A DNA stretch of 64,000 nucleotides from Takakia lepidozioides (GCA_030704615.1 CM060732.1:27466001-27530000), one strand, 5' to 3'. Positions 3,095 to 57,442 are shown, counted from the first letter of the stretch. Notes: generated from the sequence alone by a model not told the origin. Numbers and translations are program-made.

Positions 3095-3598
3095 GTCTAC
3101 AATGTTGCACGAGGGGTCCCTTCTCTTCTGGAGGTAATTTCAGAGCCTGAAATGGATCGTAGAGGTACTTATAATATTGAGATCAGTCCGCTGGGCTACT
3201 CCCCGATGTTGAGGTCGGAGAACGATATGAAGCTGTTGGCTCGGGACGTGTTAAAGGCTTTGTCTGTCCTGCATGCGGTAAACCTCGTCCATAGGGATAT
3301 CCGGTTGCCCAATATTGTGCAGGTTTCAGCGGAGGGGTTCATGCTCATAGACCTTTAAACGGTAGCTGAATCTCCATTCAAATTGCCAGAAGGATTTCTG
3401 CCTTTTGCTGATTGGAGCAAGGCCATGTTGGAGGACGGCCACTACACTCCCCAGTCAGTTTTGTATCAGCTGGGAGTACTTCTGCAATCCCGACATTGCG
3501 GTACTGCTCAGAGGTGTATTAGCAGTCTTAAGTCTAGGCAGTGGACTGCAGAGGAGGCATTGAAAGATGCTTGGTTATCTCCTGTACAAATTACATGA
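3095..3598 (+). pseudogene. C-terminal kinase fragment of a Crinkler (CRN)-like protein
   Basis: Reads VYNVARGVPSLLEVISEPEMDRRGTYNIEISPLG...LVHRDIRLPNIV...FMLIDL*...YTPQSVLYQLG...TAEEALKDAWL, with an in-frame stop at 3356-3358. Aligns by eye with the kinase at 7799-8280(-). Its 5' part is replaced by the repeat. Confidence 0.75.
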
Positions 3599-3715
3599 AA
3601 CTGTAGAGGCTGACTCTATTGGCTACACCTGAAGTGATTTGGTAAAATGCGGGAGGCTATAAGAAAGCCTTTCTTATACAGGGAGAGTCCCTTGATCTGG
3701 CAGCTCGCCGGTTAG

Positions 3716-4561
3716 ACACACTAGGAACAACTTAGATGCAGATCTCACATGCGCTACTCGAGAGGGAGTTTACGCCATGCACTAGTATAGACACAGAGCA
3801 CATAACAATGCAATTATCTAAAGCAGGGGATACAAACGCATCTAAAACTTGACAGCTTCAAAGGGCGAGACCAGGCAAGATCATGCAAAGTAGTGAAGCC
3901 AAATCTTTATAAACCCCAGACTAGTTTCGCTCAGCACGTGAGCTCATCAGTGGGAAAGAAAAGGAATGAGATACAAACCCCACCCCCCCATATATTACTA
4001 GGAGTGAACTGCCTCGTGTGGACAATCTTCCAAGTGGATGTCTCGTGAGGAGAAAAACCATCCAACAGATGTCTCGTACGGAGAAAAATCGTCCAAAAAG
4101 TCTCGGTGGGAGAAAGTCATCCAGTGGATGAAAACAAGTTCTCGACAAGAGAGAACCAGATCCAAAGAATAAAAATCATCCAAATAGTCAATTGCATATC
4201 TCTCAAATACAACTAACTCCAGGAGTTTATGACTATGCAACAACCAATTATGTTCAAGTTAGAGCATGTTGTGCAAAGTCATAAGGGCTGAAACCACTTC
4301 GAAAAGAACACAAAACTCGTAAGAGCTTTGCACACGCAGACCATCGCGCAACCATCGTCTTGCTAAAGCCTGCAGCTGTGTTGTCCTGAACGTGTCTAAC
4401 CACGATCCCCACCTTCCGACCTCCAAGAAGAAACACGGCTCGGTCTTCGTATTGTTGCCTCATCAAATGAATGAGCAGCTTGGTCAAAAGAATGAAGATC
4501 AACATTTGCCTCCATTACGTGAAGACGATTAAAGATGTGTTGCAGCTATCACTGTAAGAAC
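3716..4561 (-). mobile_element. Penelope-like element subfamily C, partial copy with hammerhead
   Basis: 3716-4146 is the reverse complement of 41733-42188. ORF 4254-4505(-) ends in MVARWSACAKLLRVL, weakly like the PLE-A RT C-terminus MICWRNPRKLSSFL. Confidence 0.7.
3914..3955 (-). ncRNA. Minimal type-I hammerhead ribozyme
   Basis: Minus strand reads CCCA-CUGAUGA-GCUCA-cgugc-UGAGC-GAA-ACUAGU-C-UGGG. Full catalytic core, stems I and II, palindromic stem III, GUC cleavage triplet. Confidence 0.88.
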
Positions 4562-4764
4562 GTTTAGGGTTCACATAAAGTGTCAAAACAAGTGTAGCAG
4601 TACAACGCGGATGCACCGGGTGCAAGATAAACACAATCCGGGCAAACAAGTTTTGGGGAGGCCAGTTATGTACCCCTGGAAAAATTTAGGGTTTAGGGTT
4701 TAGGGTTCACATAAAGTGTCAAAACAAGTGTAGATGGGTTTAGGGTTTAGGGTTTAGGGTTTTA
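4562..4764 (+). repeat. Alternating TTTAGGG tracts and short 3'-end copies of PLE-C
   Basis: Order is TTTAGGG, ~115 nt of the C 3' end (reverse complement of 42370-42485), (TTTAGGG)3, ~29 nt of the same end, then (TTTAGGG)3. Confidence 0.85.
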
Positions 4765-5057
4765 GACTGATTTCTAGCTTAGTAAAAAAAATAAAAATAA
4801 TGTGGTGTAGATTGCAATAGCAATGTGACTGGCCTTTGATTGAATGGACTAAGAGCAGAGACGAGCGAACGTGGAAATGGTGGAAGTGCGTGGCAACTGA
4901 GAGCTTTACAACCTCAGTGCTACTTTGCTTGTTGGTTGATTCTACGGCTGTGGGGCTATTTAGGGTTTCGGGGTTTGACTTTTGATTTGGATCTTGCTTG
5001 TACAGGGGCATGCTCTTTCCTCTAAGTTTTTTGTTACTCTACCCTTGCATGGAGGCC

Positions 5058-7112
5058 ATGATGGCTAAGCGTGAGCGTGTTCGAAAGCTTTTGGAGACAA
5101 AGCTACCACCAGAGGAGTTTGAGGAAATTAGCGACCAAGATTTGGATATACTTGTGAACAGTGGGCTTACATCTTCAAGTGTACTTACACTTGTTGCTGT
5201 TGACAGAGGTTCTTTGCCCGATGTTCTTCCTGGCTGACGTGGTGTCTCATCAGCATTTAGTGAGCCCCAGCGTTCTGTAGGTATATAAACCCTAAACCCT
5301 AAACTTCTTTGTGGTGGTCTGAGTTTCTCAAGGCTCTGCGGCCTGAGTTTGCTGATAATGAGGTTCAAGTACTTAGAGTTTGTCGTCCCCATATCATTTG
5401 CTCCTTTTGAAGAGGAAATGATAATATTAGTTATGACTCCAGAATCCTTGGTTGATTATGATCTCAAATGCCAATGAGCAGCATATTATTTGTATTTGGA
5501 ATTATGGTTGCCGACACACTTGTTTTGGAGTAAGGGATTTCGCAAGGAATATATGCATTGCACTGCTTCTTGGAAATGTCTGGCCGTGAACCTTTGTGGG
5601 CACTTTTCGTGCAAGGCAAGCCCTTCTGAATCTCTTAAAGCGCAGTGGTCGGTCAGATTGCGGCAGATGATGGCAGGTTTAAAGTGTTGTGTGGCCTGAA
5701 ACCCTAACTCTAAACCGTCATTTTGGTAGTTCACTTGTGAGTGATTGCCGTCCTTGTATCCACTTCTATTTTTATTGTGAGGGAGAGGGAGTCTTCCTTG
5801 TGTCTCTGGAGCTCTCTTGGATTTTTTGCATCCATAACCATAACCGGAACAATTTTGGACAGGCTCAATGGCATCCCACGAGTATGTACAGGGTTAGGGT
5901 TTCAAATCTTCATCTCATTTTTGTGACGTCTCTTGCTTCTTGGTTTGAACGGTGTTGTGTCTGTGTTCGCAGCCTACTTTCTTTGTGGGATTGTTGGTCA
6001 TGGAAACCATGGTTGATGGTTTAGGGTGTCAGATAGTGTGTCAAGGAGGGAGTCTGGTGAGTGTAAGTTTGTAGGGTTTGCTACCAATGTGTGAAGAATG
6101 AGTTTATGTTCTCTCTTTAGTACTTTGATGCATGTGACCTGCGAATCAGTAGTGTTGTTCAAACCTTTACGATTTCTTGAGTACCATCTTCAGAGGATAG
6201 AAAGCTCTAGCCGAAATTGTGCGCATGTTTTGAGCCGTTAATTGGTCGATGACAGAATGTGGTTGTTGGTGACCTTTGTGAGTTAACCAAAACCGGCTTG
6301 GCTGCAAAACCTTTTGTGACAGTGTTCACCCATTAGCTAGGGTGTCAGATAGTGCGTCATGGAGAGAGTATGGTGAATGTCGATGGGTTGCCTAAGGCAG
6401 TCTGAGCCCGTTTGTTTTTATGTCTGCAATTCTGATTGTGGGCAGGCACATTTGAATTCTTGCAAGACAATTGCAATTTTTTTGGTTTCTTGGCTGCGTT
6501 GTGCACTCAGGGTTTCAACAGCTTCTTCCAATCCCGTGTGTGATCCTGTGTACGGTTGATACACGCAGTTTATTCATTCGATAGATCCATGTTAACAAGT
6601 AAAATATGAGGAGGGTCCTTTGAAAGACATGGTTGTTTGTTATTTATATGTGGAATTCTGGTTGTGCACTACATGATAGATGCAACTCAACAACACGGGA
6701 TGATGGTTAGAGTGTGAGATCGCGTTGCCTAGGGCAGTCTGAGCTTGTCTTTTTCTATGTTATAAAGTTTGATGATGAGGAGGCTCCTTTGGTTGTTATT
6801 TCAGATGAACCATCACAAATCTTATGTGTCTTATATGTTAATTAATTACTTCATTAATATGATAATTACCACCATTGTGCATTTCCTTGCTTCTTGTTGC
6901 TCTGTTCTGGTCTGCCTTGCTATGCTTAACTGAATTGTTATTTGTGTCCACCAGAATTGATTGAAAGTTCTGGAGTGTGGATCAATTCTATGCTGCGGCC
7001 TCAGCCTATCAAGCTCCCACAAAACTCTTGTGAGCTAACAGCAGCATTGTTTCCTACGGATCACGGAAAGCTTCCGCTCTTCCTGTTCCGAAATTTACCG
7101 GGAAAGCTATAG
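5058..7112 (+). pseudogene. Crinkler-like gene remnant: helical header exon (5058-5280) spliced to exon 2 (from 6955)
   Basis: Exon 1 is MMAKRERVRKLLETKLPPEEFEEISDQDLDILVNSG..., with an internal TGA at 5235. Donor G|GTATAT at 5281 and acceptor CCAG at 6954 are both phase 1. Exon 2 VWINSMLRPQPIKLP resembles VLVSSWLRPLERLP in exon 2 of the minus-strand gene. Confidence 0.5.
5485..6715 (+). repeat. Composite local repeat, copy II (modules a-b-c), inside the intron
   Basis: Near-identical to 30-400 plus 2270-3094, and to the inverted copy at 10840-11975. Confidence 0.9.
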
Positions 7113-34722: not shown

Positions 34723-35295
34723 TCAACGGCACTTCGACTGGCCTAAAACAAGCTCATGAGTCATCGGGCTTCTCCACGTAAAAAAAATTACGGCCGTTCT
34801 TCGGTCCCTGTTGATCTTCACCACAATGTCGTGCCCTTCAATGAAACCACCATCAAATATCGAAAGCTTAACCGTGGACCCGGAGTGTCCGTGCGTTTCG
34901 TCCTCCAATCCAACGCGAATGTCCCTATACGCTGGGGAAGAGGACCGTACACTTGTAGGAGTATACGTGACACCGATGGACTCTACCCACGCCCATTGGC
35001 AGCAGTTCCACCACCAAGGCATAGCACTGCTCATTCTCTCCGGCTGCTGGCCGTAGATGGGGAAATTTGAATCAAGGATGTGCAGGAGCCACAGATTGGA
35101 CAGACCAAGATCGTCACCCCGCTCAAAAGCATATTGCCCTGGCAAATACTCAAAAGCAGACAATGTTTCACGCTCGACCCCACTGTTGTCAGTGCAAACT
35201 GTGTGCCAAATGACGATGTCCCACGGTGTGGCAATATAGATTGCATGATCCACGCCTCCGTAAGGGCACTCGTTGTGGTTCCGGAAGCAAGGCAT
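34723..35295 (-). CDS. Hypothetical protein, paralog of the 38112-38501 domain; probably frameshifted at its 3' end
   Basis: EDETHGHSGSTVKLSIFDGGFIEGHDIVV...VIFFTWRSPMTHELV aligns with EDESYGHRVSTTKISIYDGAYIGEHDTIV...IVFIYRHPVSHELV. Confidence 0.5.
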   Translation of the reverse strand: MPCFRNHNECPYGGVDHAIYIATPWDIVIWHTVCTDNSGVERETLSAFEYLPGQYAFERGDDLGLSNLWLLHILDSNFPIYGQQPERMSSAMPWWWNCCQWAWVESIGVTYTPTSVRSSSPAYRDIRVGLEDETHGHSGSTVKLSIFDGGFIEGHDIVVKINRDRRTAVIFFTWRSPMTHELVLGQSKCR

Positions 35296-37564: not shown

Positions 37565-38501
37565 ATGGACAGGTCTTCTCCATACATCGGGTGCATTCCT
37601 TTTCTGATGAGGTACTTAATGTATTGGTTGCAGGGACCCACATCTTGGGGCGATTGGATGCATACAGCTTGGCACAAAGTGCAGCAGTTTGTACACACTG
37701 GCGAGCTGAAATCACAGCTGATGTACTGTGGCAACTAATGTGTGAGCAGTTTTGGTTGAAACGAGTACACCTCCATTTGTGTCTCATCCAGCGAGACTCC
37801 TCTACCATCAGACTCTGACTTGTGTATGCAATAAGCTTGACTGACTCACAACAGGTCCGAGCACCCTCGGATGGAAATTTGGCCCCGTTTTTCCATCCGG
37901 GGGATGATCTTTGGTAGCCACGTGTCGGCCTCTCCACCTGAGACGACTTCATCCGAGCCCCTTCGGATGGAAATTCGGCGCCGTTTTTCCATCCGGGGGA
38001 TGATCCCTGGAAGCGAGGTGGGGCCCTCACCCTCTGGCACGACTCCATGTAAGCCCACATGGATGGCAGTATCCGCCTGCATGGAACATCCCCAAAAGCC
38101 GCACGGCCTTCTTGTATCATTGGAGGTGCTGCCAGTGGGCCTACGAGGATTGCATCGGGTGTACGTACATGCCAGAGAGGATTCCATCGCAAACAGTGTA
38201 TGGGGACATTCTCATAAGCTACGAGGATGAGTCCTATGGACATAGAGTCTCCACAACAAAGATCTCGATTTACGATGGTGCATATATCGGAGAACATGAC
38301 ACCATTGTCCACTACACCAAAGAAAAGCGGGCTGCATCCATTGTTTTCATCTACCGACACCCTGTCAGTCATGAGCTTGTTGAGAGGCCAATCGAGGTTC
38401 CAGCTTCTTGGTTCCGGATGCCCTCGAATAGTCCGTTCAAGGAGGGAACTGAAAGAAGATATTGCCGTCGACGTCTGCGGGAAGGCATGTCACAGATTTA
38501 A
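37565..38501 (+). pseudogene. F-box-like gene remnant with an unrecognised C-terminal domain
   Basis: FSDEVL...ILGRLDAYSLAQSAAVCTHW...DVLWQLMC fits an F-box. Stop at 37816, an internal ~96-bp duplication (37865-38005) and frameshifts. Confidence 0.6.
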
Positions 38502-38720
38502 TTGCAAACTTTCTGTAGTCCAGCCCAGCCAGCTCCGAGCGGTGTCCCTCCATGTGAAGCCCTCGCAGAATATCAAGAATGGATCGAGTTGCTGGGGGGG
38601 TGCTATTCCGTGAGCCTGGAGGCGTGAGCCTGTGAGCCCAGGAAACCGTGAGCCCAGCACAGGCTCACGCCACGTCAGCATACATACAGGGCCTATTTCC
38701 GCGGGTGTCACATATTTCAC

Positions 38721-39539
38721 CATTACCTTGAGTTCAATGGTAGTTTTTGGCACCAAATTCACGGGACGGCGATGGGGAGCAACTTTGCAGTTGTTTATGC
38801 TTGTTTGTTCCTTTGTCGGTTGGAGATGTACATGGATTACTTGTGCCCATCGGAGCAAGAGCTGCTTTATCTTAAGCGCTATATCGACGGCGGCTTTGGC
38901 ATCTGGGTAGGCTCCGAAAAGAGCCCCCTGTCCTAGTTACGGAACTACGGTTCCATGTTTGATGGCATCAAAATCACGACCGCCATAAGCCCGACGTCCG
39001 CCGACATCTTGGATATCACCTTCTTCAAATGAGACGACTTCATCCAAACTCGACGGCTCTTTACTAGATGTCATCAAAAGGCCCAGAACAAGTATCCATA
39101 CTTGCCTTGGTCCTCGTGGCATCCACATCACCAAAAGAAAGCTTTCGTCATCGGCGAGCTCCAACGGTACGTAATACGAGAAAGCACCATCCAAGGGTTC
39201 AACCATTTGCAACTTTTGTTTTACAAACGTCTTCGAGCCCGAGGTTATCCGGCGGCGTTCATCCGGAGTTGCTTCACCAAGATCTCCTAGGACCTTAGAT
39301 CCGCTCTACTCGACCAACAGACGCAACGCGCAGTTGAGGGTAAACGGGCCCCCTTTGTTCTTAAGCTCGACTACTCTTCGTACACTCGAGCCTTGAACTT
39401 GGGGGCCACCCTAAACCCTAGACTCTACGAGTTGCTTCAGCAAGTCCCGGAGCTTCGGTTTCTTCCTCGAGCGATGATTTGTTGGAGGAATCCGCGAAAG
39501 CTGAGTTCATTCCTAGTTAAATCTAGAATGATAGGATGA
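38721..39539 (+). pseudogene. Penelope-type reverse transcriptase C-terminal half, no C-terminal GIY-YIG domain
   Basis: YLEFNGSFWHQIHGTAMGSNFAVVYACLF...LKRYIDGGFGIW (YIDD changed to YIDG), ILDITF, YLPWSSWHPHHQKKAFVIGELQRY, RLRARGYP, ending WRNPRKLSSFLVKSRMIG*. Stops and frameshifts present. Confidence 0.88.
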
Positions 39540-39790
39540 TTTTGTAGTGCAAATATCCCTAGCATTATTAATTTTGCCTCTTTGATAGCCCTAGTATTGA
39601 TGTTAAAGTCAAAGGGTTCCAACAATTAATTTGGACCATTGACTAATTAATGCAGTCTTGACTTGGAGGCTATATTAGTGCTTTAGTGGCATTATTATTG
39701 CCTTGGGAATTATCCCATATCGTTTGCACATAGTGAGGGTGCCTTTCTAGTATATAATGATAGGCTTGGCTCTTAGGACTTCATCTCTTG

Positions 39791-39844
39791 GTGTTCCACT
39801 GATGAGCTTGAGCAATCAAGCGAAACTTGTTTGGAATAAAACAC
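39791..39844 (+). ncRNA. Minimal type-I hammerhead ribozyme (PLE-A)
   Basis: UUCCA-CUGAUGA-GCUUGA-gcaa-UCAAGC-GAA-AC-uu-GU-U-UGGAA. Stem I is extendable through GUGUU/AACAC. Confidence 0.88.
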
Positions 39845-40713
39845 CTTAACTCTTTTTGTGTCTCCACACTTAGAGAAGTTGAGAGTCTAGTCCTTGCCCG
39901 CCCGGGCAACTTGGATCGAAGGGGTGCTCGGCTCCAAGGGGAATCCCAACCCTTGGATACTTCCGAGGCCTTTTTTCTTTCCGAAGCACAGGCGTATAGA
40001 GCCTTCCGTTTGACGCCATCTTAGCCACCTCTTACAATGGGGAAGGTGGCTGGGGGTATATGGTAATCGTGTCGGGCAAGCTAATTTAGCCCCAACTACA
40101 CGGTTCCCCCTGTCGTACGCCCGATGGTCGGAGAGAAGGGACTTGGTTGATCCTCCCTCGAGTTCATCTCGAGCGATCAGAGGACTATGGGCATGCGCAA
40201 GCCTCTGCCGACCTAACCTTCTCGTCGATGACCTTATGCGGTAATCCCTCTCATTCTTCCTTAGAGGTACGAACCTCTTTTTGAAGGTGGGGCATATAAG
40301 TTTTCCAACTAGGGGTTGAGACTTGACCCTATGTTTGTGAGTGCCTTGAGCGCATGCTTGCCCATAGTGAGCAAGATTTTTTGTCGCTAAACAAGGAGAA
40401 GCAAACATAAAAAAGCTTATGGTTGGAGTGAAAATGCATCATTCTTCAATTAGAGAACCTTATCTCGTGAGGGCGAGAGTCCTTGCATAAGACATAATAG
40501 TCTTATTGCATCCCTTTAGGCACGATAGACGCACTTTGTATGCATTTGTCTTGGTTTCCATTGCATTTGTATTTGGATCCGAACCGGCCCCCCTTAAAAA
40601 TTACTGTGTCTTTTTCCAGTATTTTATCTACTTTTTGTTATCTTTGCAGCCTTTGTTGACCAGCCCTAACCCTAAACCTAAACCCTAAACCTGCGGATCT
40701 TTTAGAAGATGGT

Positions 40714-41121
40714 CTAGGGTTTAGGGTCTAAGGTGGTCAATAAAGGCTTGCAAAGGTAACAAAAAGTAGAAAAAAGTAGAAAAAGACAGTAAATTTTAAG
40801 GGGGGGCGGTTCGGACCCAAATACAAATGCAATGAAAACCAAAACAAATGCATACAAAGTGCGTCTATCATGTCTAAAAGGATGCTATAAGACTGTTATG
40901 TCTTATGCAAGGACTCCCGCCCTCACGAGATAAGGTTCTCTAATTGAAGAATGAGGCACTTTCGCTCCAACCGTAAGCTTTTTTATGTTTGCTTCTCCTT
41001 GTTTAGCGACAAAAATCTTGCTCACTATGGGCAAGCATGCGCTCAAGGCACTCACAAACATAGGGTCAAGTCTCAATCCCTAGATGGAAAACTTATGCCC
41101 CACCTTCAAAAAAAGGTTCGT
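40714..41121 (-). mobile_element. Inverted 3'-terminal copy of PLE-A attached to TTTAGGG repeats
   Basis: Reverse complement of ~40268-40660, preceded by TAGGGTTTAGGGTCTAAGG. Confidence 0.9.
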
Positions 41122-41122
41122 T

Positions 41123-41718
41123 AGTTGTCTTTTTATCTTATGCTCTTTTTGAGACAACACTTATTCGACAGTATACTGGCGGTGAGGCTCATTGCACTTC
41201 ACTCCATTTCTTTCTTCCCACTGAAGAGCTCAGATTTTGAGCGAAACTAGTCTGGGGCTTATAAAGATTTGCTAGTATTCTGCATATAAGTGTGTTTTGT
41301 CTCACTTTCCCCTTTGTGTTGTTGTACCTTACAGTTGCATTGTTTAGACTGTCTATCTAGTCTTGCCTTTGCTGCTAGGTTTGTTCTCTAGTGTGTGTTT
41401 TCTCTTCCATAAGAGATAGATTTTTGTTATCCTGTATTTACGGTGAAACAGTCTCAGTCATACACTTTAGTCATTTGCATGTCTTTGTTCAGAACATATC
41501 AACATCACTCATATCCTACCTTTGTGTCTTCAGAATCATCTCTTTGAGTTTTTCTATAGATATCTTGAAGTTTTTTCAGAGCATAACCGGCCCTCCTAAA
41601 AACTTTTTAGTCTGCACTGTGTTACTATTGCACCCGGTGCATTCACGGTTCAAATTTGTTGTACTGCTACATTTAGTTCCAATCTTTTGAAGACCCTAAA
41701 CCCGAAACCCTAAACCCA
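41123..41718 (+). mobile_element. PLE subfamily B 3' unit (hammerhead to telomeric tail)
   Basis: Hammerhead at 41216. Shares AACCGGCCCTCCTAAAA and the TGCACCCGGTGCA hairpin with subfamily C. Ends CCCTAAACCCGAAACCCTAAACCC. Confidence 0.8.
41216..41257 (+). ncRNA. Minimal type-I hammerhead ribozyme (PLE-B)
   Basis: CCCA-CUGAAGA-GCUCA-gauuu-UGAGC-GAA-ACUAGU-C-UGGG. Confidence 0.88.
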
Positions 41719-41732
41719 CGGAGTTAATTGTA

Positions 41733-42507
41733 GTCGATAACTTGTTTTCATCCACTGGATGATTTTCTCCCACCGAGACTTTTTGGACGATTTTCTCCGT
41801 ACGAGACATCTGTTGGATGGTTTTTCTCCTCATGAGACATCCACTGGAAGATTGTCCACACGAGGCAGTTCACTCCTAGTAGTATATAAGCGGGGGGTGG
41901 GTTTTGTATCTCATTCATTTTCTTTCCCACTGATGAGCTCACGTGCTGAGCGAAACTAGTCTGGGGTTTATAAAGATTTGGCTTCACTACTTTGCATGAT
42001 CTTGCCTCGTGGTCTCACCCTTTGAAGTTGTTGAGTTTTTCGAAGTTGTCGAGTTTAAGATGCGTTTGTATCCCCTGCTTTAGATCATTGCATTGTTATG
42101 TGCTCTGTGTCTATACGATAGTGCATGCCATAAACTCCCTCTCGAGTAGTGCATGTGAGATCTGCATCTAAGTTGTTCCTAGTGTGTCCATTCTCTTGCA
42201 AAACAGAGACAGGGTTCTATTCTCCTGTGCATCCAGTGAAATAGTTCTCATACGCACTTTTGCCTCGTGCATAGGTTTGCAGTTGCATTTCATGACACCT
42301 CACATACTTCTATTCTAGTTTCCTGTCTCTCAGGATCTCTCCTTTCAGGTTTGATTCACAGGATCTGAAATTTTTCTAGGGGTGCATAACTGGCCCCCCT
42401 AAAACTTGTTTGCACGGATTGTGTTTATCTTGCACCTGGTGCATCCGCGTTGTACTGCTACATTTGTTTTGACACTTTCTGTGAACCCTCAACCCTCAAT
42501 CCTCAAC
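41733..42507 (+). mobile_element. PLE subfamily C 3' unit
   Basis: TATATAA at 41883, hammerhead at 41925, and a degenerate telomeric tail AACCCTCAACCCTCAATCCTCAAC. Other copies at 3716-4146, 4570-4733 and 49208-49303. Confidence 0.82.
41925..41966 (+). ncRNA. Minimal type-I hammerhead ribozyme (PLE-C)
   Basis: CCCA-CUGAUGA-GCUCA-cgugc-UGAGC-GAA-ACUAGU-C-UGGG. Confidence 0.9.
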
Positions 42508-42529
42508 ATTCAGCCCTTTCAATTGCCTC

Positions 42530-44000
42530 GTTCAAAGTCTTAGGTGGCTTCTCCTCCAACTTCCGCCTGGCCCATGGGGCCAGTCCCGCCACAAAGTTGA
42601 AGCCATTTCTGGTTCTGCCATGTCCGCGACTTTGAGTAACAACACATTGAAATCCTGAACATATCCCCGAATGTCATCCGTTTGCTTCAAATTCCTCATC
42701 TTGTCGCAGGTGAGCCAGGACGCGTTGAGGGGCACAAACTGTCTCTTCATAAGTTCTTTGAACCCACTCCAACTCAAGGTTTCCGAGTTTGGATCTTGGT
42801 TGTGGAGACGTTTCTGCCACCATTGTTGGGCATAGCTCCTCAAATAGGTGGGAGCCACTTCCACCCGATCCTCGTCGCTCAACTTGGCCGCTCGGAAGTA
42901 TTACTCTAGCTCCAGGAGCCAGGTGTTGAGTGCCTTCCGATTTCGGACGCCCTCAAAGGTGCCGGGTTCCTTAGGCTTCACCTTAAACTTGCCTTAGTGG
43001 AAGTGACATTAGCCGCCTTCAACACGTCTTTCAACGTCCCGCCAAACTGCGCCAACAACCCTTCCCAAAAGGCTGCTGGCATGGGAGACATCTGTTGGTC
43101 TGGCGGAGCCTCTTGAAGGTCCTCGGACTCCGACTCCCAAAATTCCTCCCGTCCTTATGCGGCCTCGCTCTCAGAAGCATGAATCGCCTCTTCAAATTGC
43201 CGCTTCGGTGACACGTCGCTCCCACCGGCCTCACCAGGATCATAATCTTTCGGGTTGTTCTGCTTTCGCTTGGTCTTGTCCGACCCCATGATGAGGCTGA
43301 TCTCAAGGACGATCACGTACTGAACTCTAAGCTCTGATACCAAGTGTTGCGTACCGAATGGTCGAGGGTCTTAGAGACGGGCGGCCCTAGAACCGCCAAG
43401 TCCTTCCTTTCAGGGGACCGCGGATAGCGCGAGACCCTCCACCATTGTTGGGGGCTCCTCTCCAGGGGTTCAGGTAAGGGCGGGACAGTCGAGGGTCTCG
43501 GCCCTCGAGTGTCGGGCTGCGAGGGAGGGGTGGGGGGAAGGCGCGACGGTTGAGGGTCGCGGCCGGCCGGAGACCATCGACCATCGTGGAGGATGCGTAG
43601 GGCTGAGCTGGTCGAGGGTCTTGTCTCGCGCTCTGGAGACCCCCGAGCACTGGGGCAGGGAGGGCCGGTGCGGTCAGAGGGTCTCGGCCTGCACGAGATT
43701 GGGCTGCTCTAGGGGGTCGGGACGGTCGAGGGTGTTGTGCCGCGCTCCCGAGACCTCGACCACTGGGGCAGGGAGGTCCGCGGCCGGCCGGAGACCCTCG
43801 ACCACCGTGGAGGTTGCGCGGGGCCTTTGCCGGTCGAGGGTGATGTCCCGCGCTCCCGAGACCCTCGACCACCGAGGCAAGGAGGGCCGGGACGGTTGAG
43901 GGTCGCGGCCGGCTGGAGACCCTCAACCAAGTCCGCAGGTTTCGCCCCTCAATGGCTTCCACGCCGCGACCCTCGACCGTCCGCCAACCGCACTTCCGTC
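42530..44000 (-). mobile_element. Ty3/Gypsy fragment: partial GC-rich 5' LTR (from 43345), tRNA-Met PBS (43331-43342), gag remnant
   Basis: PBS TGGTATCAGAGC on the minus strand. Gag reads KEPGTFEG...YLRSYAQQWW...SWSGFKELMKRQF...LKQTDDIRGYVQDF. The LTR has repeated GAGACCCTCGACC motifs. Confidence 0.85.
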
Positions 44001-44034
44001 CTCAGAGGGTTTAGAGGGTTTAGAATTCACAAAT

Positions 44035-44137
44035 TTAGGGTTTAGGGTTCAGGGTGGTCAACGGCTTGCAAAGGTAACAAAAAGTAGAAAAAATACTCAA
44101 AAACGACACATTAAATTTTAAGGGGGGCCAGTTCGGA
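44035..44137 (-). mobile_element. TTTAGGG repeats plus a short 3'-end copy of PLE-A
   Basis: TTTAGGGTTTAGGGTTCAGGG followed by TGGTCAACGGCTTGCAAAGGTAACAAAAAGTAG...GGCCAGTTCGGA, matching the reverse complement of 40577-40660. Confidence 0.85.
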
Positions 44138-44139
44138 GG

Positions 44140-44410
44140 TTTACTATTTCATGAGCAGAAACCATGAGCCATGAGCCATGAGCCATGAGCCGCATGAGCG
44201 GCGAGCCGAAGTTTAAGACACGCGGTTTTCATGAGCGGACTCCTCCAAATTTGGAAATGCGGCAGATTAAAAAAGTATTAAAATAATAGTTTTTTTTTAA
44301 TTTGACCTTGCCATTTTTGAAAATTCCAGATCCTGTAATGCGGCGAAGATATGTCGTGTGTAACAACTCCGCTCATGGTTTTGTAGATCCGCTCATGGAA
44401 ATGAGTGACT
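44140..44410. mobile_element. MITE-like element with CATGAGC subterminal repeats
   Basis: Left end ACTATTTCATGAGC with (CATGAGC)n; imperfect inverted right end GCTCATGGAAATGAGT. Related ends at 54871 and 38602. Confidence 0.5.
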
Positions 44411-46946
44411 GGACAACGAGAAATCCAGTATACCATGGCAAAAGGACGTCACATACTGGCCTGTATAGAGTATTCCGCGGTTTTACATGCCTTAACATTG
44501 GAATGAAGCTGACCCTTCTGTCGCGATTGAACCAATAGAGTCTGCACCAATAGAGTCTGTAGTACTTCACAATTCTGTCATCTTCGGGTATTTGGCAGGA
44601 AAAGTTTGTGACTCAACTGGGAAATGCGGTGCCGCATTACGGTTCGTACGTGTGAAATTTCTGGGGGGTTTGGTGTTGGCGACGGTCGTGATCAGGTCAA
44701 CCGAATGATCACCCAATTTTTGAATGACCTGCCAAGCTTCATGATACAATTATGCTAAATGCCCTTGTTTGCATGTAGACCTCGCCCTGGTTTGGAGCTT
44801 TGGAGGTCGGATCTCTCAGAGCTCGTTGTGGTTGTTTATGTTTCATATTCAATTTTTTAGTAAGCTAAAAAGGTATTGGTATTCTATAGAATGAGCTTGG
44901 AAAATTGAATGTAATGTTCAAGGCAGTTAATTTTGGCATGTTCTCTTAGTTACTCATTGTGCAAGTTTTTGGTGCAGGATTCTAGGGACTCTGGGCAATT
45001 CTTGGTCAGTTCTACTCATTTATGTTTCTACCCTTGTCTACTTTTACAGGCTAAGGGAGTCCGGCTCTTGCACCAAGTTAAGTTGAAGACTAAATTTCAT
45101 TAAGTTCCTTCTACATGATTTGAGGGCCATCATTCACTTTTCCTGATTGTGGTTTCACATCCTTGGGCATTGTTGGTCCAATGAGAAAGCCTAAAATTTG
45201 TAAGGTCAATTATAGAAATTGTATCATTCTACTGCTGCTTATACTTAGCATGGTTAATACATGCAATAAACTTCTGAACCTCTCCACATGCCTTGAACTT
45301 TGGGGTTCGAATTTGTGAGTTCAGAGGGCTATCTTTCAGAGTGTCCTTTACAAATATTATCTTGTTTGGTGCGACTGATGGATTACCTTCAAGTAGACAC
45401 TTGTAGGGGTTGGCTTGTTAGTTCCTCCTAGTTAGAGTTTCAAGAAATCGTGTTCTGATTCATCATAGATTTTAATCTAAACAAACCACCAGAGTCCTCA
45501 AAAGTTTTAGGGTTTAGGGTACTTCACCCTAAATCCCCCATTTCGGTTCAGCATTGAAGCAATATCTTTGTTTTTCGTAAACTTGGTGAAATTTTTAGCA
45601 TTTGAAATATATAGCATGAAACAACGTTGTTGTCAAATTGAAAAGTACTGCTCTGTAAACAGCCTCTGGTTTCATATACAATGAAGTGCCTTTCTCTTTT
45701 CTTGTTTTGTTCCGAGGAATAATAATGACACATCAACAAAAATGAATACCTTGTTTACTCGAGCGAAAACTAAAACGGAAGTTTTAGTTTTGTCTTTATC
45801 ACATCTACGTTATCTGATGGAAAGCTAAGCTTGAAGAGTGAACTGTGAGTTCAACATGGAATCATGATTACACGGGAAGCTCAGAAACAGGGATGTTCTC
45901 AGAATTGGTGAAACCACCTATGCAGTTGCGGAGGTCAAATCCTGCCTCAATGGCAACATTCAACACGACGTGCCGGAGAACAAGATGAGAGTGCATCAAG
46001 GGATTGGACTCGAATTTGAAATCATGGAGTCACTAACTGAGGCTGTCATGGCCAAGGCCATCTGCAGAGTCCAAAAAATCCAGTAAGGCCAACAAAGACA
46101 TCTCCTAAACATTAAGAAAAACAGTGCTGTCATTGTACTGTACAGATCTATTGGACCTTGACCAAAAAAACCTCTATACACTCTGGGTACAAGGATCTCT
46201 GGTTCATTCTCCTAGAGTACACGATGGCAGAATGAGGTTCATGGGTTTCCAAAAATTAAACCAGCAACACTTGTCTCCAAGAAATAAGTTCTTCGGTATC
46301 AACATTCTGCACATATCAATATTCAGTGTACACACCCAGCAGGGATGCCCCCCCTATGAGCAAGATCGCCGAGTTTCTGCACATGTTCCAACATGACTTC
46401 CAGTTGCACACACTCTCTCTTGCGATCTTCAGTACTGGTGATGGGTCGTGAAATACCAAAATCGATCAAACAAACACCTTAATGCCCCCTAAACATCGAA
46501 TGTCCCCATGAAGAAGTGCACAGCAGCAAGTGCATCAACAGTCGCTTCCACCGCCTCTAGTCAAAACTCCTGCAAACGACACATCCAACATATTAGACAA
46601 CCACTTTGCTACAAGCTTAAGCAAGAACCGCAGACAACTCTTTCGCCTTTTACCAAGAATTACAGTGCAATCAGAATGAATTCCAACAGCTCCAGTTTTC
46701 TGGGATTCCCTCTCATTTGGCCAGCAACAATTACCTCTCATTCTTTTTAGTCTATTTGATTAGATCATCTAGAATTATGTGAAAAACTGGAGGTGCCATA
46801 AAACAGTGTACAAAAGGTCAATCAGAGAATATAGGTTAAAGAGAATCCAATTGCAGATTTAAGAGCAGAGCCTCAAACATGTAGCAACTACGGACAAGGT
46901 TTTACTAACTTGCACAAACATCAGCAAACATCAGCAAACATCAAGG

Positions 46947-47252: not shown

Positions 47253-49200
47253 CTACACAACTCCATCCGAGAACCACCAAGAAGAGGAAGAAGAAGGCAA
47301 ATTTACCATCTCTCCCAGACGATCCCCCTTCGTAAGGTACATGCTGTTCACACAATTCCATGTCTTCAAGACTCTCATGCCCGAGGCTTTCAAATAGCTG
47401 GCAAGTGCACGGCGACAGCGAACGTCGGTGGACTGTATGAGCACCAAAACACTTGCAACGGACAGGAAAAAATTGCAAAAGGAGAAAACCCACCGCCAGT
47501 AGCGCTCATCAAAAGCATTCCAACCCGGACAAGCACCCGATGGAGGGACATCCGGGACTGCCAACCCATCAGGGATGTCCAAGATTATGAGTTCGGCTGC
47601 ATATTGCTTCTCCTTCCCGTTCACCCAGGATTTGGTCATTTTAGCCTGCAAACAAAATTACAATGGAATACTCAAGAGGATTGAAACGATCCATGCCCAC
47701 AGCAGAGAAGAAGCAAAAGAGAACACGCACCATGCCGAGGAACTCCACAATCTTCTCCCACACTGGTGATGGCTCGCCCTTGTAATCAGATTTCTTGGAC
47801 TCCATCATGGCAAGGAATCCGACATTGGCCATCTCCAACCTGGTAGGGCGAATGACCCTCGTGGGATATTCCACTGCATGGTACGGGTCCTTGGGATCAA
47901 CCACCCCCTTGTTCTTTCTCACGGATCCCCTACCATGCGGTGGAGTCTGCTGGACATGCACCACTGGGCCAATATCTGCAACACTTCCCTGCCCTTGTGC
48001 CACCTTCCCTCTACCCCTTCCTTTCCCCACAACACCAGCAACATCTTTTCCCTTTGCCTTTCTACCTCTACCCGGGGTATCCCGAGTGGGAGGCTCCTTC
48101 TCTGCAAGAGTCCTCAAATTTCGTTCATGAATGTCGAGGTCGGCTACTGCGGCAGTGGCTGCAATACGCTCATTCTCTCTCCTCAAAGACACCTCCGGAG
48201 CTGGGGTCTCAGAAGGAGGGCAATCCAAATACCAACCACAAGAAGAAAGATGGTCTGGGCCCCAGTCATGCAAGATCCTAGTAGTAAACATGGTCTAGTT
48301 GCCAGCAGGGACAAGCCAAAGGTCCACGAAATCTGGATGTTTGTCTAAGCAATTCTCTTCCATGAGAACAAACTTTATGTACCTGCAGGAACAGAGACAG
48401 CCTCATTATGCAATGCAATTATTGTCTCTCAGCTTTTCCATCACACCAGGAAGACCCCCTTAAACTGTATGCGTCACAGTACATTGCAACCACAGCACAC
48501 TAAGTAGCCTGAACGGCCCAGGGTGTGCACCTGTAAAGGCATCGTTTCCAGGCTTCCTCTGTCATGTGTTCGACTGATGCCACCCTCCTTGCTGAACTCT
48601 CTAAAGAAACAAGAGTACCACACTGTGGCTCTCCATTTCCTCATGTATGCTTCGAAGGAGACCTTCGGTGCTGTCATAGTGATGCCATAGTCAGCCAGCT
48701 GAGTATGCAGAACCGACCGTGCCATTTCTTCCAACTGCAAAACAATTCAAATGCAAGAATGAACCCAAAAACAATCACAGCGAATGTGAGAGGCAATGGA
48801 AAGAGAAGGACATGAAAAGAGAAAGTGACACAGGAAAGGACATCACACCTGGCTCCAGTAAGTGGCCTTGTGAAGCCATGTGTCCAGCACATTGTCACTG
48901 ACAGGAATGACACGCTGGGTCTTCTTTTCTTTCTCCGGCCTAGGGAACATGTGGGTATCCCTAATTGTGGGATCGGAGTTCCATATCTGTAGCCACTTCA
49001 CCTTCTGTTCTGAAGACACAACGGCGGTAGACAACCTGTGCAACTTCTCCTGGGCCATCTCTGGCTTGCCTGGCTTGTTATAATGGTTTTTTATCTCCAG
49101 GAGAAACTGCGATCCGAATGATGGGTCGGCAATTCTCAACTGCTTCACAAAAGCACTCATTATAGTCTTTCTTGTAGCGGTCATCTCTTTCTGGATGTGA
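47253..49200 (-). pseudogene. Multi-exon or frameshifted gene remnant ending in an amino-methyltransferase-like domain
   Basis: AELIILDIPDG...PGWN...WVFSFCNFFL...VLVLI resembles the DLIxxDPPY strand, following helix and strand of beta-class N6A/N4C methyltransferases. Upstream ORFs 49200-48843, 48740-48474 and 48291-47641 are collinear. Confidence 0.4.
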
Positions 49201-49207
49201 GCCCCCC

Positions 49208-49303
49208 GCTCAGCACGTGAGCTCATCAGTGGGAAAGAAAAGGAATGAGATACAAACCCCACCCCCTGCTTATATACTACTAGGAGTGAACTGCCTCGTG
49301 TGG
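49208..49303 (-). mobile_element. 96-bp PLE-C fragment (TATA plus the 5' part of the hammerhead)
   Basis: Matches 3928-4021 and the reverse complement of 41855-41952. Lacks the AAACTAGTC half of the ribozyme. Confidence 0.85.
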
Positions 49304-54440: not shown

Positions 54441-54863
54441 TTAGGGTTTGGGGTGGTCAACAAAGGCTTGCAAAGGTAACAAAAAGTAGAAAAAATACTG
54501 GAAAAAGACACAGTAAATTTTAAGGGGGACCAGTTCGGACCCAAATACAAATGCAATGGAAACCAAGACAAATGCATACAAAGTGCGCCTATCGTGCCTA
54601 AAGGGATGCTATAAGACTATTATGTCTTATGCAAGGACTCCCGCCCTCACGAGATAAGGTTCTCTAATTGAAGAATGAGGCACTTTCGCTCCAACCGTAA
54701 GCTTTTTTATGTTTGCTTCTCCTTGTTTAGCGACAAAAAAAATTGCTCACTATGGGCAAGCATGCGCTCAAGGCACTCACAAACATAGGGTCAAGTCTCA
54801 CCCCCTAGTTGGAAAACTTATATGCCCCACCTTAAAAAAGAAGTTCGTACCTCTAAGGAAGAA
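54441..54863 (-). mobile_element. 3'-terminal copy of PLE-A attached to TTAGGGTTTGGGG
   Basis: Reverse complement of ~40254-40660. Confidence 0.9.
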
Positions 54864-54867
54864 GATG

Positions 54868-56195
54868 TTAGCTATTTCATGAGCATGAGCGGCATGAGCG
54901 TAGTAGCAAGACAATATGAGCATAAGTACAAATTCTTCCGCTCATGCGAATTCCGAGCGACATCTGCAAAAATGGCGCCGAATTTCGCGGTAATAGGTTC
55001 CGCAATCGGAGAAATTTACGACGTATTTCGACATCTATTTCGACATCTATTTCGACATCAACCTCTTCAGGTAAATGTAATACAAATGCTTGCACGGATA
55101 ATACTTTGAACCCTTCTTTGCTTCCATCACGAGAAGTCCGTACAATTGCAAGTCGGCTCCACTCCAATTGTAATTGTGTATACATCGTCGCGTACAGCTG
55201 AGCCCGCCGTTGCCATCCGATAAACACGTCCAAGGCCGGGTGGGGGTACGTCCACGGAGCTCTGAATAGTGCAAGCCATCCCAAGAGCATTGGCAATCCG
55301 AGTCTCATTCAACTTGTTGGGAAGGTGTCGTCTTTTCACTCTTCCGAATCGCATTGTGGGATGTGCAGAATTGTCCAATCCGTCTCTACTGGACCGAGCA
55401 GTCTGCAATGGCTGGGTCTGAGGAACTGGAAATGTGTGGCCGGGACGTCTTTGCGTTGCACCATTCGAAATCTTGCTGCAGAAAGAGCATCCGCCTCATT
55501 CTGAAAGAGATTGCAACCCGGTGCAACATGCCAGACGCCCGGAGGCTCTGGTATTCCCTGAATCTCGTACTTGGGCTTGTCAAATACACAGGTCATTATG
55601 TCGTGCTTACAGAACCAAAACGTCCGCGTTGTTGCGTGAGCAAATGTGAGAGTAAAAAATCTACCACTGAAACAAGGTGCAGGTACAACACCGTGTGGGT
55701 TCCTCCGAATCATCTCACCACAACGTGCTCTCATATCCACCTGGATGGCGCAGCACTTCCCACGAAATGTTGGCAATGTCCTTGCAATTCTCCACTGTGA
55801 CTCCGACACTCTTGTCTCTACAATGGGTATGTTGTACTGCGTTACAATAGATGGCTCGTTATGTTCCCCGGACATGTGCCATGTGCTCAAAGGAGATGAC
55901 GATCTTGAATGTGCAGGACTTGCGGTGCTCGACGAGACCTCCTCGGGCAATATCACGGGACCACGAGGGAGCGTTCGAATATTCTTGTCAGCTCGCCATG
56001 AATCCTCTTCTCCGTCAGATGCCTCATCAAGTCTTCGTCTTACTGGAGGGGTGTGAACATCTCCTTCCAAGTGTTGGCCTCTTCGAAGCAATGGCATGTC
56101 CCGAAGGCCCCTATCGCAAGGCTGCCGCCCACTTCCGAGGATTCTTCGATCTGGAGGCAGTCCGCATCAGCATTTCTTGCCTGTCCGGCCCCAAG
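54868..56195 (-). mobile_element. SWIM zinc-finger gene remnant next to a CATGAGC-type terminus
   Basis: DVYTITIGVEPTCNCTDF...YPCKHLYYIY (CxC...CxH) split across frames. Cys/His-rich ORF 55336-56097 upstream. Ends at GCTATTTCATGAGC repeats. Confidence 0.6.
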
Positions 56196-56213
56196 TTTAG
56201 GGTTTAGGGTTTA
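56196..56213 (+). repeat. Interstitial telomeric tract
   Basis: TTTAGGGTTTAGGGTTTAG at the boundary between the GC-balanced SWIM segment and unrelated AT-richer DNA. Confidence 0.8.
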
Positions 56214-57442
56214 GAGAAGTGCAAAGGAAGGAAACTAAAGAACAACATTATTTTGATACTTTGACTTCGAAAGTGGAGTTTCTCCAGCAATCTTGATTGA
56301 ACTGTGTGTTGGTTTTTTCTTGCCTATGCAGTCTTCATCCTGTCAACGAGGTTTCCTGTATTTACTGATTGCAATCCACATGGCCAAGTACTTGTTAGTA
56401 GAAAGTCAACCTCACACTCTCAAAGACTCGCCTGAATTTGATATTTTTTCGATTCAATTTTTTTTTGAACTGGATATGTGTGCTTATATGGAACGTCCAG
56501 GGTATCTACTAGGGCTCTTGCATCCTGTATCTTACTCAGCTCGATGACTCCAGGAACGGCTACCATCCCTTATCAACCGTTTAGGCATTTTTGCGCCTAA
56601 TATGAACATTGCTCTTAGAAGTCGTCACTAGTAGAAAAATGGGAAGCAACACGTAGTTCTGGGACTAACAATGAACCTAACAACCAACATTTAGCGCAAT
56701 GGTAAAGGCAAATCACATGTTAGATGTCGCAAATGTGATTACCTTCCCATGATCAAAAGGCAATAGCCATTCGGAGTTAAGTAGCACCATAAGACTTTAA
56801 GTGATCTAGTTGTTTCGCCATGGCATTCACATTATTAATAATGAATTGAACATCTAGCTAGTGGAAGTCCAATGTCATGGATACTCGTTGAAGACTAATA
56901 AGGTTAAAGGCCTAGAACTTGAATGTTGAGCTAGTGGTACAAAGTACTGCTACAAAGCTACTGATATGCTCTTGTTAACTTGAAAACTTATGCATAATTA
57001 AAGAGGGGGCCAAAGAAAAGAGAGCAAAGGTACTGGATGTGCCAAAAATGAAATAGAGATGGTCAGCCAGTGGTCAATCTGAGATATCTAATACGATTTG
57101 TGCCAGTACTCATTTGCAGACAAGGGAAAAATTGAATAACCTTTAAGTAATGAAAATTTCTGACGACAACTTTGTAAAGCTGGAGTGTATTACTTTTTGG
57201 GGATTTTCTATTCTATCAGCTATCAGCCATCAGTCATCAACCTCAATGTGACGTGGATGCGGAAACGGCGGCTACGTGGCAATATAATATTTTTCTCGGG
57301 CTGCCCGTAATTGTATGCTTGGATTTGTGAGAAACAATAATGAAAAATGACACGGGATTGTACTGACACGCCACCTTTGGCTGTCGAAGGTGGAGGCTGA
57401 GCGGGAGAACATAAAGGTAAAAACGAAATAAACGGATGTCGG

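Follow-up and report, generated by a model that had tools for sequence, protein, structure and literature searches.

A decayed cluster of Penelope-like elements and protein-free derivatives with telomere-type tails in Takakia lepidozioides

Endonuclease-less Penelope-like elements (PLEs) are the closest retroelement relatives of telomerase, and such elements have been described before in rotifers, fungi and a spike moss. Here we analysed a window of 64,000 nucleotides (nt) of Takakia lepidozioides (GCA_030704615.1 CM060732.1:27466001-27530000; positions count from its first letter), in which a cluster at 38691-42507 contains the remnant of a PLE-type reverse transcriptase (RT) in a unit A, an inverted copy A′ and two non-coding units, B and C, as determined by sequence reading and translation. 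With a probability of roughly 0.6, we read this locus as a decayed cluster of an endonuclease-lacking PLE and its protein-free derivatives that primed on exposed DNA ends, either breaks or eroded ends.

Among plants, Selaginella moellendorffii is the published host of telomere-associated endonuclease-deficient PLEs (Gladyshev & Arkhipova 2007, via PMC4209133, PMC8557442 and PMC12477314), and it is the sole plant named for such PLEs in a 2025 review. Like the cluster described here, Coprina-clade PLEs, including those of Selaginella, combine a PLE-type RT without GIY-YIG, short 3′ repeats of reverse-complement telomeric sequence, a non-coding hammerhead ribozyme and head-to-tail stacking. The present cluster differs by its plant lineage and by a hammerhead that is minimal, with a helix III of 2 bp, whereas the Selaginella hammerheads are described as canonical (PMC4209133). 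The second close system is that of the Athena elements and Terminons of rotifers (Arkhipova et al. 2017, via PMC6431247), which according to that source share the endonuclease-less RT, the 5′ truncation by short telomeric stretches, the head-to-tail or interspersed arrays with host DNA, including host genes, and a hammerhead with a telomere-complementary 3′ tail. However, in the description given there the telomeric stretch lies immediately 3′ of the hammerhead, which is the 3′-terminal fold, while here the tail follows the hammerhead at a distance of 436-832 nt, a TATA box stands 47 nt ahead of the ribozyme, and the units measure 0.6 to about 5 kb instead of being giant. A literature search combining Penelope, liverwort and telomere found no paper. 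What differs from the published cases is the host lineage, the minimal ribozyme, which follows a TATA box and is remote from the tail, the protein-free tailed units and the head-to-head complexes against host DNA.

In A, B and C the parts come in one order: the TATA box is followed by a minimal hammerhead of type I and this by 0.4-0.8 kb of body that includes a conserved 3′ box, and the unit closes with a CCCTAAA-type tail. The cluster is made of the following features.

38691-39535, + strand: unit A, PLE-type RT remnant from motif B (GTAMG) to the C-terminus (one frame, translation)
39752-39758, + strand: TATATAA box of A, 47 nt before CUGAUGA (alignment A1)
39790-39841, + strand: hammerhead of A, predicted cleavage after U 39831
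39842-40663, + strand: 3′ body of A, with the 3′ box GAACCGGCCCCCCTTAAAA at 40581-40599 (alignment A3)
40664-40691, + strand: tail of A, CCCTAACCCTAAACCTAAACCCTAAACC (sequence, 14-mer count)
40692-40710, no strand: 19-nt spacer between facing tails, near-palindrome ATCTTTTAGAAGAT (6/7 pairs)
40711-41124, - strand: unit A′, inverted 5′-truncated copy of A's last 411 nt (repeat search, self-BLAST, alignment A3)
41125-41717, + strand: unit B, non-coding, 5′-truncated by about 95 nt (alignments)
41212-41262, + strand: hammerhead of B, predicted cleavage after C 41252
41693-41717, + strand: tail of B (sequence)
41720-42507, + strand: unit C, non-coding, with full 5′ end GGAGTTAATTGTA (alignments, self-BLAST)
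41921-41971, + strand: hammerhead of C, predicted cleavage after C 41961
42484-42507, + strand: variant tail of C, AACCCTCAACCCTCAATCCTCAAC (sequence)

A sequence-only reading of this stretch had proposed that A, B and C each carry a type-I hammerhead and a CCCTAAA-type tail and that the site is internal. These hammerheads and tails are in the sequence, and the flanks of the cluster are not telomere but an F-box gene and a gypsy gag fragment. The simple A-B-C chain proposed with them does not stand, since the inverted A′ lies between A and B, leaving A out of the chain. B and C are arranged head-to-tail with telomeric repeats between them, as claimed, but the additional spacer of about 15 nt is in fact the 5′ end of C itself, which is also found in a copy at 4.2 kb. 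With 89% identity to A and a G-strand stub of its own (40711-40733), A′ stands tail-to-tail with A and head-to-head with B, the two truncated copies A′ and B being joined directly without filler (41124/41125).

The RT remnant of A contains the motifs GTAMG, RYIDG, ..SSWHP.., GELQRY and RLRARGYP in this order. These agree with the consensus of 59 relatives (GTAMG, RYID(D->G), SxHP, GELxRY, RLRARGYP), with YIDG at the position where the relatives read YIDD (RYIDD). The frame is interrupted by stops at 38934, 39030 and 39288 and has no upstream continuation, indicating that the copy is 5′-truncated and dead; it misses the N-terminal ~300 amino acids (aa) and any first open reading frame (ORF1). 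Pfam gave no match for any of the four RT pieces without stops; the 85-aa thumb piece, used as query in an exhaustive HMMER search, returned 1348 matches at E<=1e-3. By tblastn (E from 1e-26 to 3e-90), the remnant covered the last 240-280 aa of full-length relatives of 555-623 aa and ended 1-12 aa from their C-termini (P0006 366-603/604, P0007 276-545/555, P0017 305-576/580 and P0014 339-611/623). P0017, which comes from S. moellendorffii (GCA_000143415.2), is 46.6% identical to A over 277 aa. Therefore, the RT of A, said earlier to end without a GIY-YIG domain, does so where full-length relatives stop.

Since A is truncated, natural full-length relatives, and not an element consensus, served for the endonuclease test. 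None of the 77 relatives of at least 480 aa among the best 150 of the 1348 matches had a GIY-YIG domain at either end at E<=0.01 (0/77), including four that are 47-53% identical to A and have complete N-termini. The upstream ORFs of the two related loci scanned (L001 and L004) had none either, so that the N-terminal GIY-YIG with CxC linker of Naiad and Chlamys elements was found in neither set. The nearest ESM Atlas clusters, in which Rotifera are commonest, combine DUF8422, HTH_animal and RVT_1, the domains carried by the relatives of A's RT; a PDB sequence search with P0014 gave nothing useful. As far as relatives can answer, these data support an endonuclease-lacking PLE family, in line with the sequence-only reading. 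Judged by its features, the cluster belongs to the known Athena/Coprina kind, and the nearest neighbours of its RT, one copy each from Selaginella and Puccinia together with rotifer-rich clusters, hint indirectly at a place in one of these two clades.

The family could nevertheless possess an endonuclease that cuts the target and is absent from the truncated A, either an N-terminal GIY-YIG as in Naiad and Chlamys or another ORF. A alone is compatible with this, given its missing N-terminus and ORF1. However, besides the negative scans of relatives, four intact hammerheads are present in the window, whereas Naiad and most Chlamys elements are described as being without canonical ones (PMC8557442), and no target-site duplications were seen, the flanks being single-copy in the window. 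Taking this together, we consider a hidden endonuclease extremely improbable. Two further coding candidates were compared with relatives. The ORFs at 54880-56097 (-), candidates for a PLE ORF1, had no similarity to the ORF1s of relatives, which differ among themselves too, and an antisense ORF of 173 aa in the 3′ untranslated region (UTR) of A had none to the antisense ORF of L001 and was treated as chance.

The hammerhead pattern CTGANGAG..CGAAA matched six times in the window, against 0.10 matches expected by chance. Four of the hammerheads are intact, with cores at 39799 (A), 41221 (B), 41930 (C) and 3925 (-); that of B reads CTGAAGAG, which is allowed at core position 7. An alignment was made of A, B and C with a further copy (3909-3959, -) and with L005, a relative found in another organism. 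First, the 11 core bases and the cleavage triplet were invariant. Second, the pairing of stems I and II was kept through four double-sided changes (A, B/C and the relative), with 96% of paired cells against 18-40% in slid-partner controls, and folding recovered both stems. Third, helix III consists of two pairs (A-U and C-G; AC/GU) closed by a 2-nt loop, its hexamer being palindromic in B and C (ACUAGU), L005 (ACGCGU) and L001 (AUCGAU) and imperfect in A (ACUUGU). As expected for a helix III of only two pairs, Rfam misses these ribozymes: no hammerhead reached the gathering score at either threshold, the best scores being 19.6 and 16.4 bits, and we accepted them on core, stem and covariation evidence. 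The ribozymes have the "dimer-type" minimal form described for animal PLEs and not the canonical form of Selaginella (PMC4209133). The same hammerhead model applied to the Selaginella locus and to L001-L003 gave no match, the ribozymes there being different.

The distance from hammerhead to tail is 832 nt in A, 440 nt in B and 522 nt in C, compared with 207 nt in L005 and ~550 nt in L003, so the direct adjacency of hammerhead and telomeric stretch seen in Athena and Terminons does not occur here. As in A, the TATATAA of C (41883-41889) lies 47 nt before CUGAUGA, and the TATA box of B is degenerate. In A, a weak candidate for the upstream sequence element (USE) of plant small nuclear RNA genes, TCCCATATCG at 39713-39722, lies 30 nt before the TATA box with one mismatch; one-mismatch matches occur in the window at chance frequency (four found, 3.3 expected). 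Upstream of its TATA box, C has four tandem motifs of ~29 nt (..GGATGATTTTCTCCCACCGAGAC..) at 41745-41870; they are conserved at 4.0-4.15 kb, in the other copy, and might be repeats of a promoter or an enhancer. A 97-nt fragment of the C-type TATA/hammerhead region at 49197-49303 (-), 97% identical, ends inside the ribozyme (..CTGAGCG), 10 nt short of the cleavage site, and is directly followed by a Ty3 capsid-like ORF.

Telomere-type 14-mers are enriched in the window (24 against 0.28 expected). All eight recognisable 3′ ends of the family adjoin telomere-type repeats in C-strand polarity (8/8), with tails of 9-28 nt, which bears out the polarity given in the sequence-only reading. The 5′ truncation points of A-type copies differ (40254, ~40266-40269 and 40578 in A-coordinates), as expected for synthesis begun at the tail. 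That reading had also attributed the stubs to telomerase. The tail of C speaks against this: it consists of CCCTCAA x3, with the identical change from CCCTAAA in every unit. Since telomerase would not make CCCTCAA, the stub of C was probably copied, reiteratively, from the RNA tail of the element, and prior telomerase action is therefore not required.

Other copies lie elsewhere in the window. At 4562-4764 (-), a stub is followed by a 29-nt C-type 3′ end, a stub, a 126-nt C-type 3′ end, a 9-nt stub and unrelated DNA. This stack, which includes abortive copies of the last 126 and 29 nt of C, is the record of several rounds of repeat addition and aborted copying at a single DNA end, which afterwards became joined to other DNA. 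The stub at 4739-4763 caps a complementary DNA (cDNA) without any element behind it, and thus repeat addition to cDNA ends also happens. A longer C-type copy (3715-4146, -) is 90.6% identical to C, and an A-type copy (54441-54863, -) is 95% identical to A. Further telomere-type stubs of both polarities at 4959-5303, 45506-45520 and 56196-56216 have neighbours that match none of the A, B and C families; one 320-nt segment is bordered by TTTAGGG at one end and by CCCGAAACCCTAAA at the opposite end, and one stub stands 100 nt ahead of minus-strand ORFs of 253 and 143 aa without family match.

The flanking features of the cluster are as follows.

37639-38501, + strand: left flank, host-like F-box gene (PF12937, E 1.7e-07, above the curated cut-off; translations)
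38596-38690, no strand: "E-like" piece, GCTATTCCGTGAGCC then GTGAGCC-type 7-mers (like pieces at 44138 and 54864)
42508-44033, - strand: right flank, Ty3/gypsy fragment (gag, cut after ..AIERAEC; PF03732, E 5.8e-13; translation)
44034-44137, - strand: further A-type 3′ end of ~100 nt, with stub TTTAGGGTTTAGGGTTCAGGG (repeat search, alignment A3)

Written from left to right, the first complex reads W / E-piece ~ A-tail / 19 nt and the second 19 nt / tail-A′ ~ B-tail-C-tail / gypsy fragment. The 1.5-kb gypsy piece in turn faces the tail of C on its left and a TTTAGGG stub with an inverted A-type end on its right, the latter end (44034-44137) having apparently primed off the right end of the fragment. 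The pattern host / tail-unit (inverted) ~ unit-tail / host occurs twice in a row. Stacking on one terminal end is expected to give a single orientation and cannot alone generate the present pattern, nor can simple terminal stacking produce a gypsy piece with both ends faced by tails. Extension of both ends of a break followed by joining gives the observed pattern, which is why end priming is favoured.

From this junction anatomy, together with the family identity, the lack of an endonuclease, the tail polarity and the truncation pattern described above, we infer end priming, an origin in breaks and an order of events. The RNA tail would pair with, or simply be copied onto, a free DNA 3′ end, and the RT would extend this primed end, with frequent abortion of synthesis leaving 5′-truncated copies. 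Had the RT extended the 3′ ends on either side of a chromosome break, joining of the products would result in head-to-head units with tails outward. Inverted 5′-truncated partner copies are a hallmark of PLE insertion (PMC8557442), and that endonuclease-less retroelements use free ends opportunistically is the standard view, according to PMC8557442 for PLEs and PMC4700185 for long interspersed element 1 (LINE-1). Endonuclease-independent LINE-1 insertion at breaks and dysfunctional telomeres (Morrish 2002, 2007, listed in PMC4700185) is alike in using a pre-existing DNA 3′ end as primer and leaving a patch without target-site duplication. It differs by its unrelated class of RT, by having been shown experimentally in repair-deficient cells and by having neither a telomere-complementary tail nor a ribozyme.

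Alternatively, the A/A′ palindrome could be a fold-back copy made at a break beside the tail of A. Three-way comparison with the 54-kb copy gave 10 A-specific sites, 20 A′-specific sites and 8 sites specific to the 54-kb copy or common to A and A′, a pattern that does not decide between fold-back and second insertion for A′. Since the palindrome arms are only 89% identical, an assembly fold-back artefact is argued against.

A different history would be that of a fossil telomeric or subtelomeric array, in which the units were stacked on true chromosome ends, as Terminons are, and later moved inside by inversions, fusions or ectopic recombination. The succession of B, stub and C is a classical head-to-tail stack, longer (CCCTAAA)n arrays occupy the contig ends at the related loci L002, L003 and L005, and host genes lie among the units of Terminon arrays as published (PMC6431247). 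Moreover, additional elements 3.5-21 kb before the window make the region a large cluster, and the near contig end may lie close by. Yet here both orientations alternate within 7 kb, tails on both sides face host fragments of 19 nt and 1.5 kb, the stubs measure only 9-28 nt and a mere 95 nt separate the host F-box gene from the cluster. In addition, the contig continues at least 9.9 Mb past the window on the side for which this is established. Given these observations, we regard the fossil array as possible, though rather unlikely.

The sequence-only reading had gone further than opportunistic priming and proposed a break-patching system of telomerase plus retroelement, in which TTTAGGG units added by telomerase to an internal break are annealed by the RNA tail and the end is extended by the RT before religation. 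Taken in full, such a system would be dedicated to this task and serve the host. Some observations fit, namely that outward tails meet host DNA and that, at 4562-4764, stubs alternate with the 29-nt and 126-nt abortive copies and one stub caps the last cDNA. Against it, the CCCTCAA x3 stub of C is not a telomerase product, the copies are dead and decaying, host benefit is without evidence, and opportunistic use of free ends already accounts for such insertions in the literature (PMC4700185, PMC8557442). Nothing indicates a host-serving function, and nothing speaks for a "system" over opportunism, so that we hold this proposal to be very unlikely. Nor is the idea of break patching new, endonuclease-independent L1 repair and Terminon arrays with captured host genes having been published.

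Several points also weigh against priming on exposed ends. First, the junctions are known from the assembly sequence, and without an empty site or sister allele an insertion is indistinguishable from a later rearrangement. No second copy of either flank exists within the window, and a target-site duplication or deletion therefore cannot be scored here; in search of an empty site, the remainder of the gypsy element was looked for on the left side, where the flank is the F-box gene instead. Second, three complexes within 7 kb, with host scraps of 19 nt and 1.5 kb between them, are many for independent breaks. Third, the 19-nt spacer is nearly palindromic (6/7 pairs, roughly p 0.05 allowing for the choice of centre), so that A′ may have arisen by duplication rather than by retrotransposition. 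Fourth, the copies are old (67-95% identity, stops in the RT), which makes later rearrangements likely. Finally, the known extent of the contig beyond the window (at least 9.9 Mb) concerns one side.

The flanks themselves offer some additional observations. The F-box-like domain lies at 37639-37746 and the stop of the last exon at 38499-38501. This last exon (38046-38498, +) has a diverged paralogous segment 3.5 kb off on the opposite strand (34744-34968, -; EDESYGHRVSTTKISIYDGAYIGEHD vs EDETHGHSGSTVKLSIFDGGFIEGHD), and no Pfam family was found for either segment. The E-like piece, 95 nt long and beginning at 38596, adjoins the truncated 5′ end of the RT remnant. Such pieces occur on the + strand at 38596-38690, 44138-44200 and 54864-54900; they start with (G)CTATTYCRTGAGC, continue with the 7-mers CATGAGC / GTGAGCC and meet the truncated 5′ ends of three A-type copies whose truncation point is different in each. 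Their 7-mer period equals the length of the telomere unit. The E-like piece could be the end of another element family, acquired via template switching, or the 5′ region of the autonomous element.

Units B and C have no ORF longer than 99 aa. What they have in common with the 3′ UTR of A is the TATA box, hammerhead, 3′ box and tail, and each has a single type-I hammerhead and no terminal direct repeats. In this they resemble the animal non-LTR (long terminal repeat) retrozymes, for which an origin from PLE pseudo-LTRs, as non-autonomous derivatives, has been proposed (PMC7229834; bioRxiv 10.64898/2026.07.22.740005): like those, they are protein-free and keep the PLE type-I hammerhead with flanking cis sequences, a likeness at the level of DNA. 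They also outnumber the RT copy within the window. They differ by their telomere-complementary tails, by stacking via stubs instead of as plain tandem monomers and by their plant host. Plant LTR retrozymes are marked by type-III hammerheads in LTRs, a primer-binding site and polypurine tract (PBS/PPT) and a 4-bp target-site duplication, a description that B and C, with their type-I hammerhead, telomeric tail and lack of terminal direct repeats, do not fit.

The same module was seen in relatives from other organisms. A full unit at L005 begins with telomere repeats, which a small ORF and the RT follow; then come TATAAATA, 38 nt further on a hammerhead and, after 207 nt, (CCCTAAA)n at the contig end. 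At L001-L003, head-to-tail [ORF1][RT] units of ~4.9 kb each contain a hammerhead and are separated by a telomere stub or array; at one boundary a short stub precedes the next ORF1 by 25 nt, and in L002 and L003 the longer arrays lie at contig ends. Telomeric 3′ tails were present in L003, L005 and L006, and CCCTAAA tracts flank the Selaginella copy at either end. Therefore, the TATA-hammerhead-body-tail module is, on this comparison, a family trait and not a local accident.

A further telomere-like sequence lies within the coding region. The codons ACC CTA AAC CCT (T L N P) at 39408-39422, ~115 nt before the RT stop, correspond to the telomere C-strand and recur at the homologous position in Selaginella, L004 and L007 (TCC CTA AAC CCT AAA), although these RTs share just 47-53% amino-acid identity. 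In relatives, the positions are 6614-6628 in L006, 3735-3745 in L004 and the SLNPK codons of the P0004 ORF in L007. L005 encodes different residues at ~3218-3229 (F L T L I) and its DNA is still AACCCTAA, while the motif is absent from the RT of L001. It looks like conservation at the nucleotide level of a telomerase-template-like or telo-box motif in the RT mRNA, of which the literature searches made here turned up no description. On this basis, the family could be a self-contained end-healing machine, whose telomerase-related RT would act both on its own mRNA, with the putative template-like CCCUAAACCCU (~115 nt before the stop, with identical codons in four diverged lineages and apparently conserved as nucleotides), and on small tailed non-coding RNAs. 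The latter would be TATA-driven, processed by the hammerhead and endowed with telomere-complementary tails, and at internal breaks both ends would be extended and rejoined, leaving head-to-head patches as at this locus. We consider this possibility quite unlikely; if true, the family would represent a living intermediate of retroelements and telomerase in a land plant.

Priming on exposed DNA ends thus stays our preferred reading, under which the locus preserves a useful trace, though one with precedents, of chromosomes broken long ago; being a single decayed locus, it adds an instance rather than a proof. It presents a second plant lineage in which this family gave rise to protein-free, ribozyme-bearing derivatives, and its units end up against ordinary genes and transposons, not solely at chromosome tips. 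If it is true that head-to-head complexes with tails outward mark broken chromosomes, they would be datable scars of break repair and would offer a natural system for how a telomerase-like RT chooses its DNA end.

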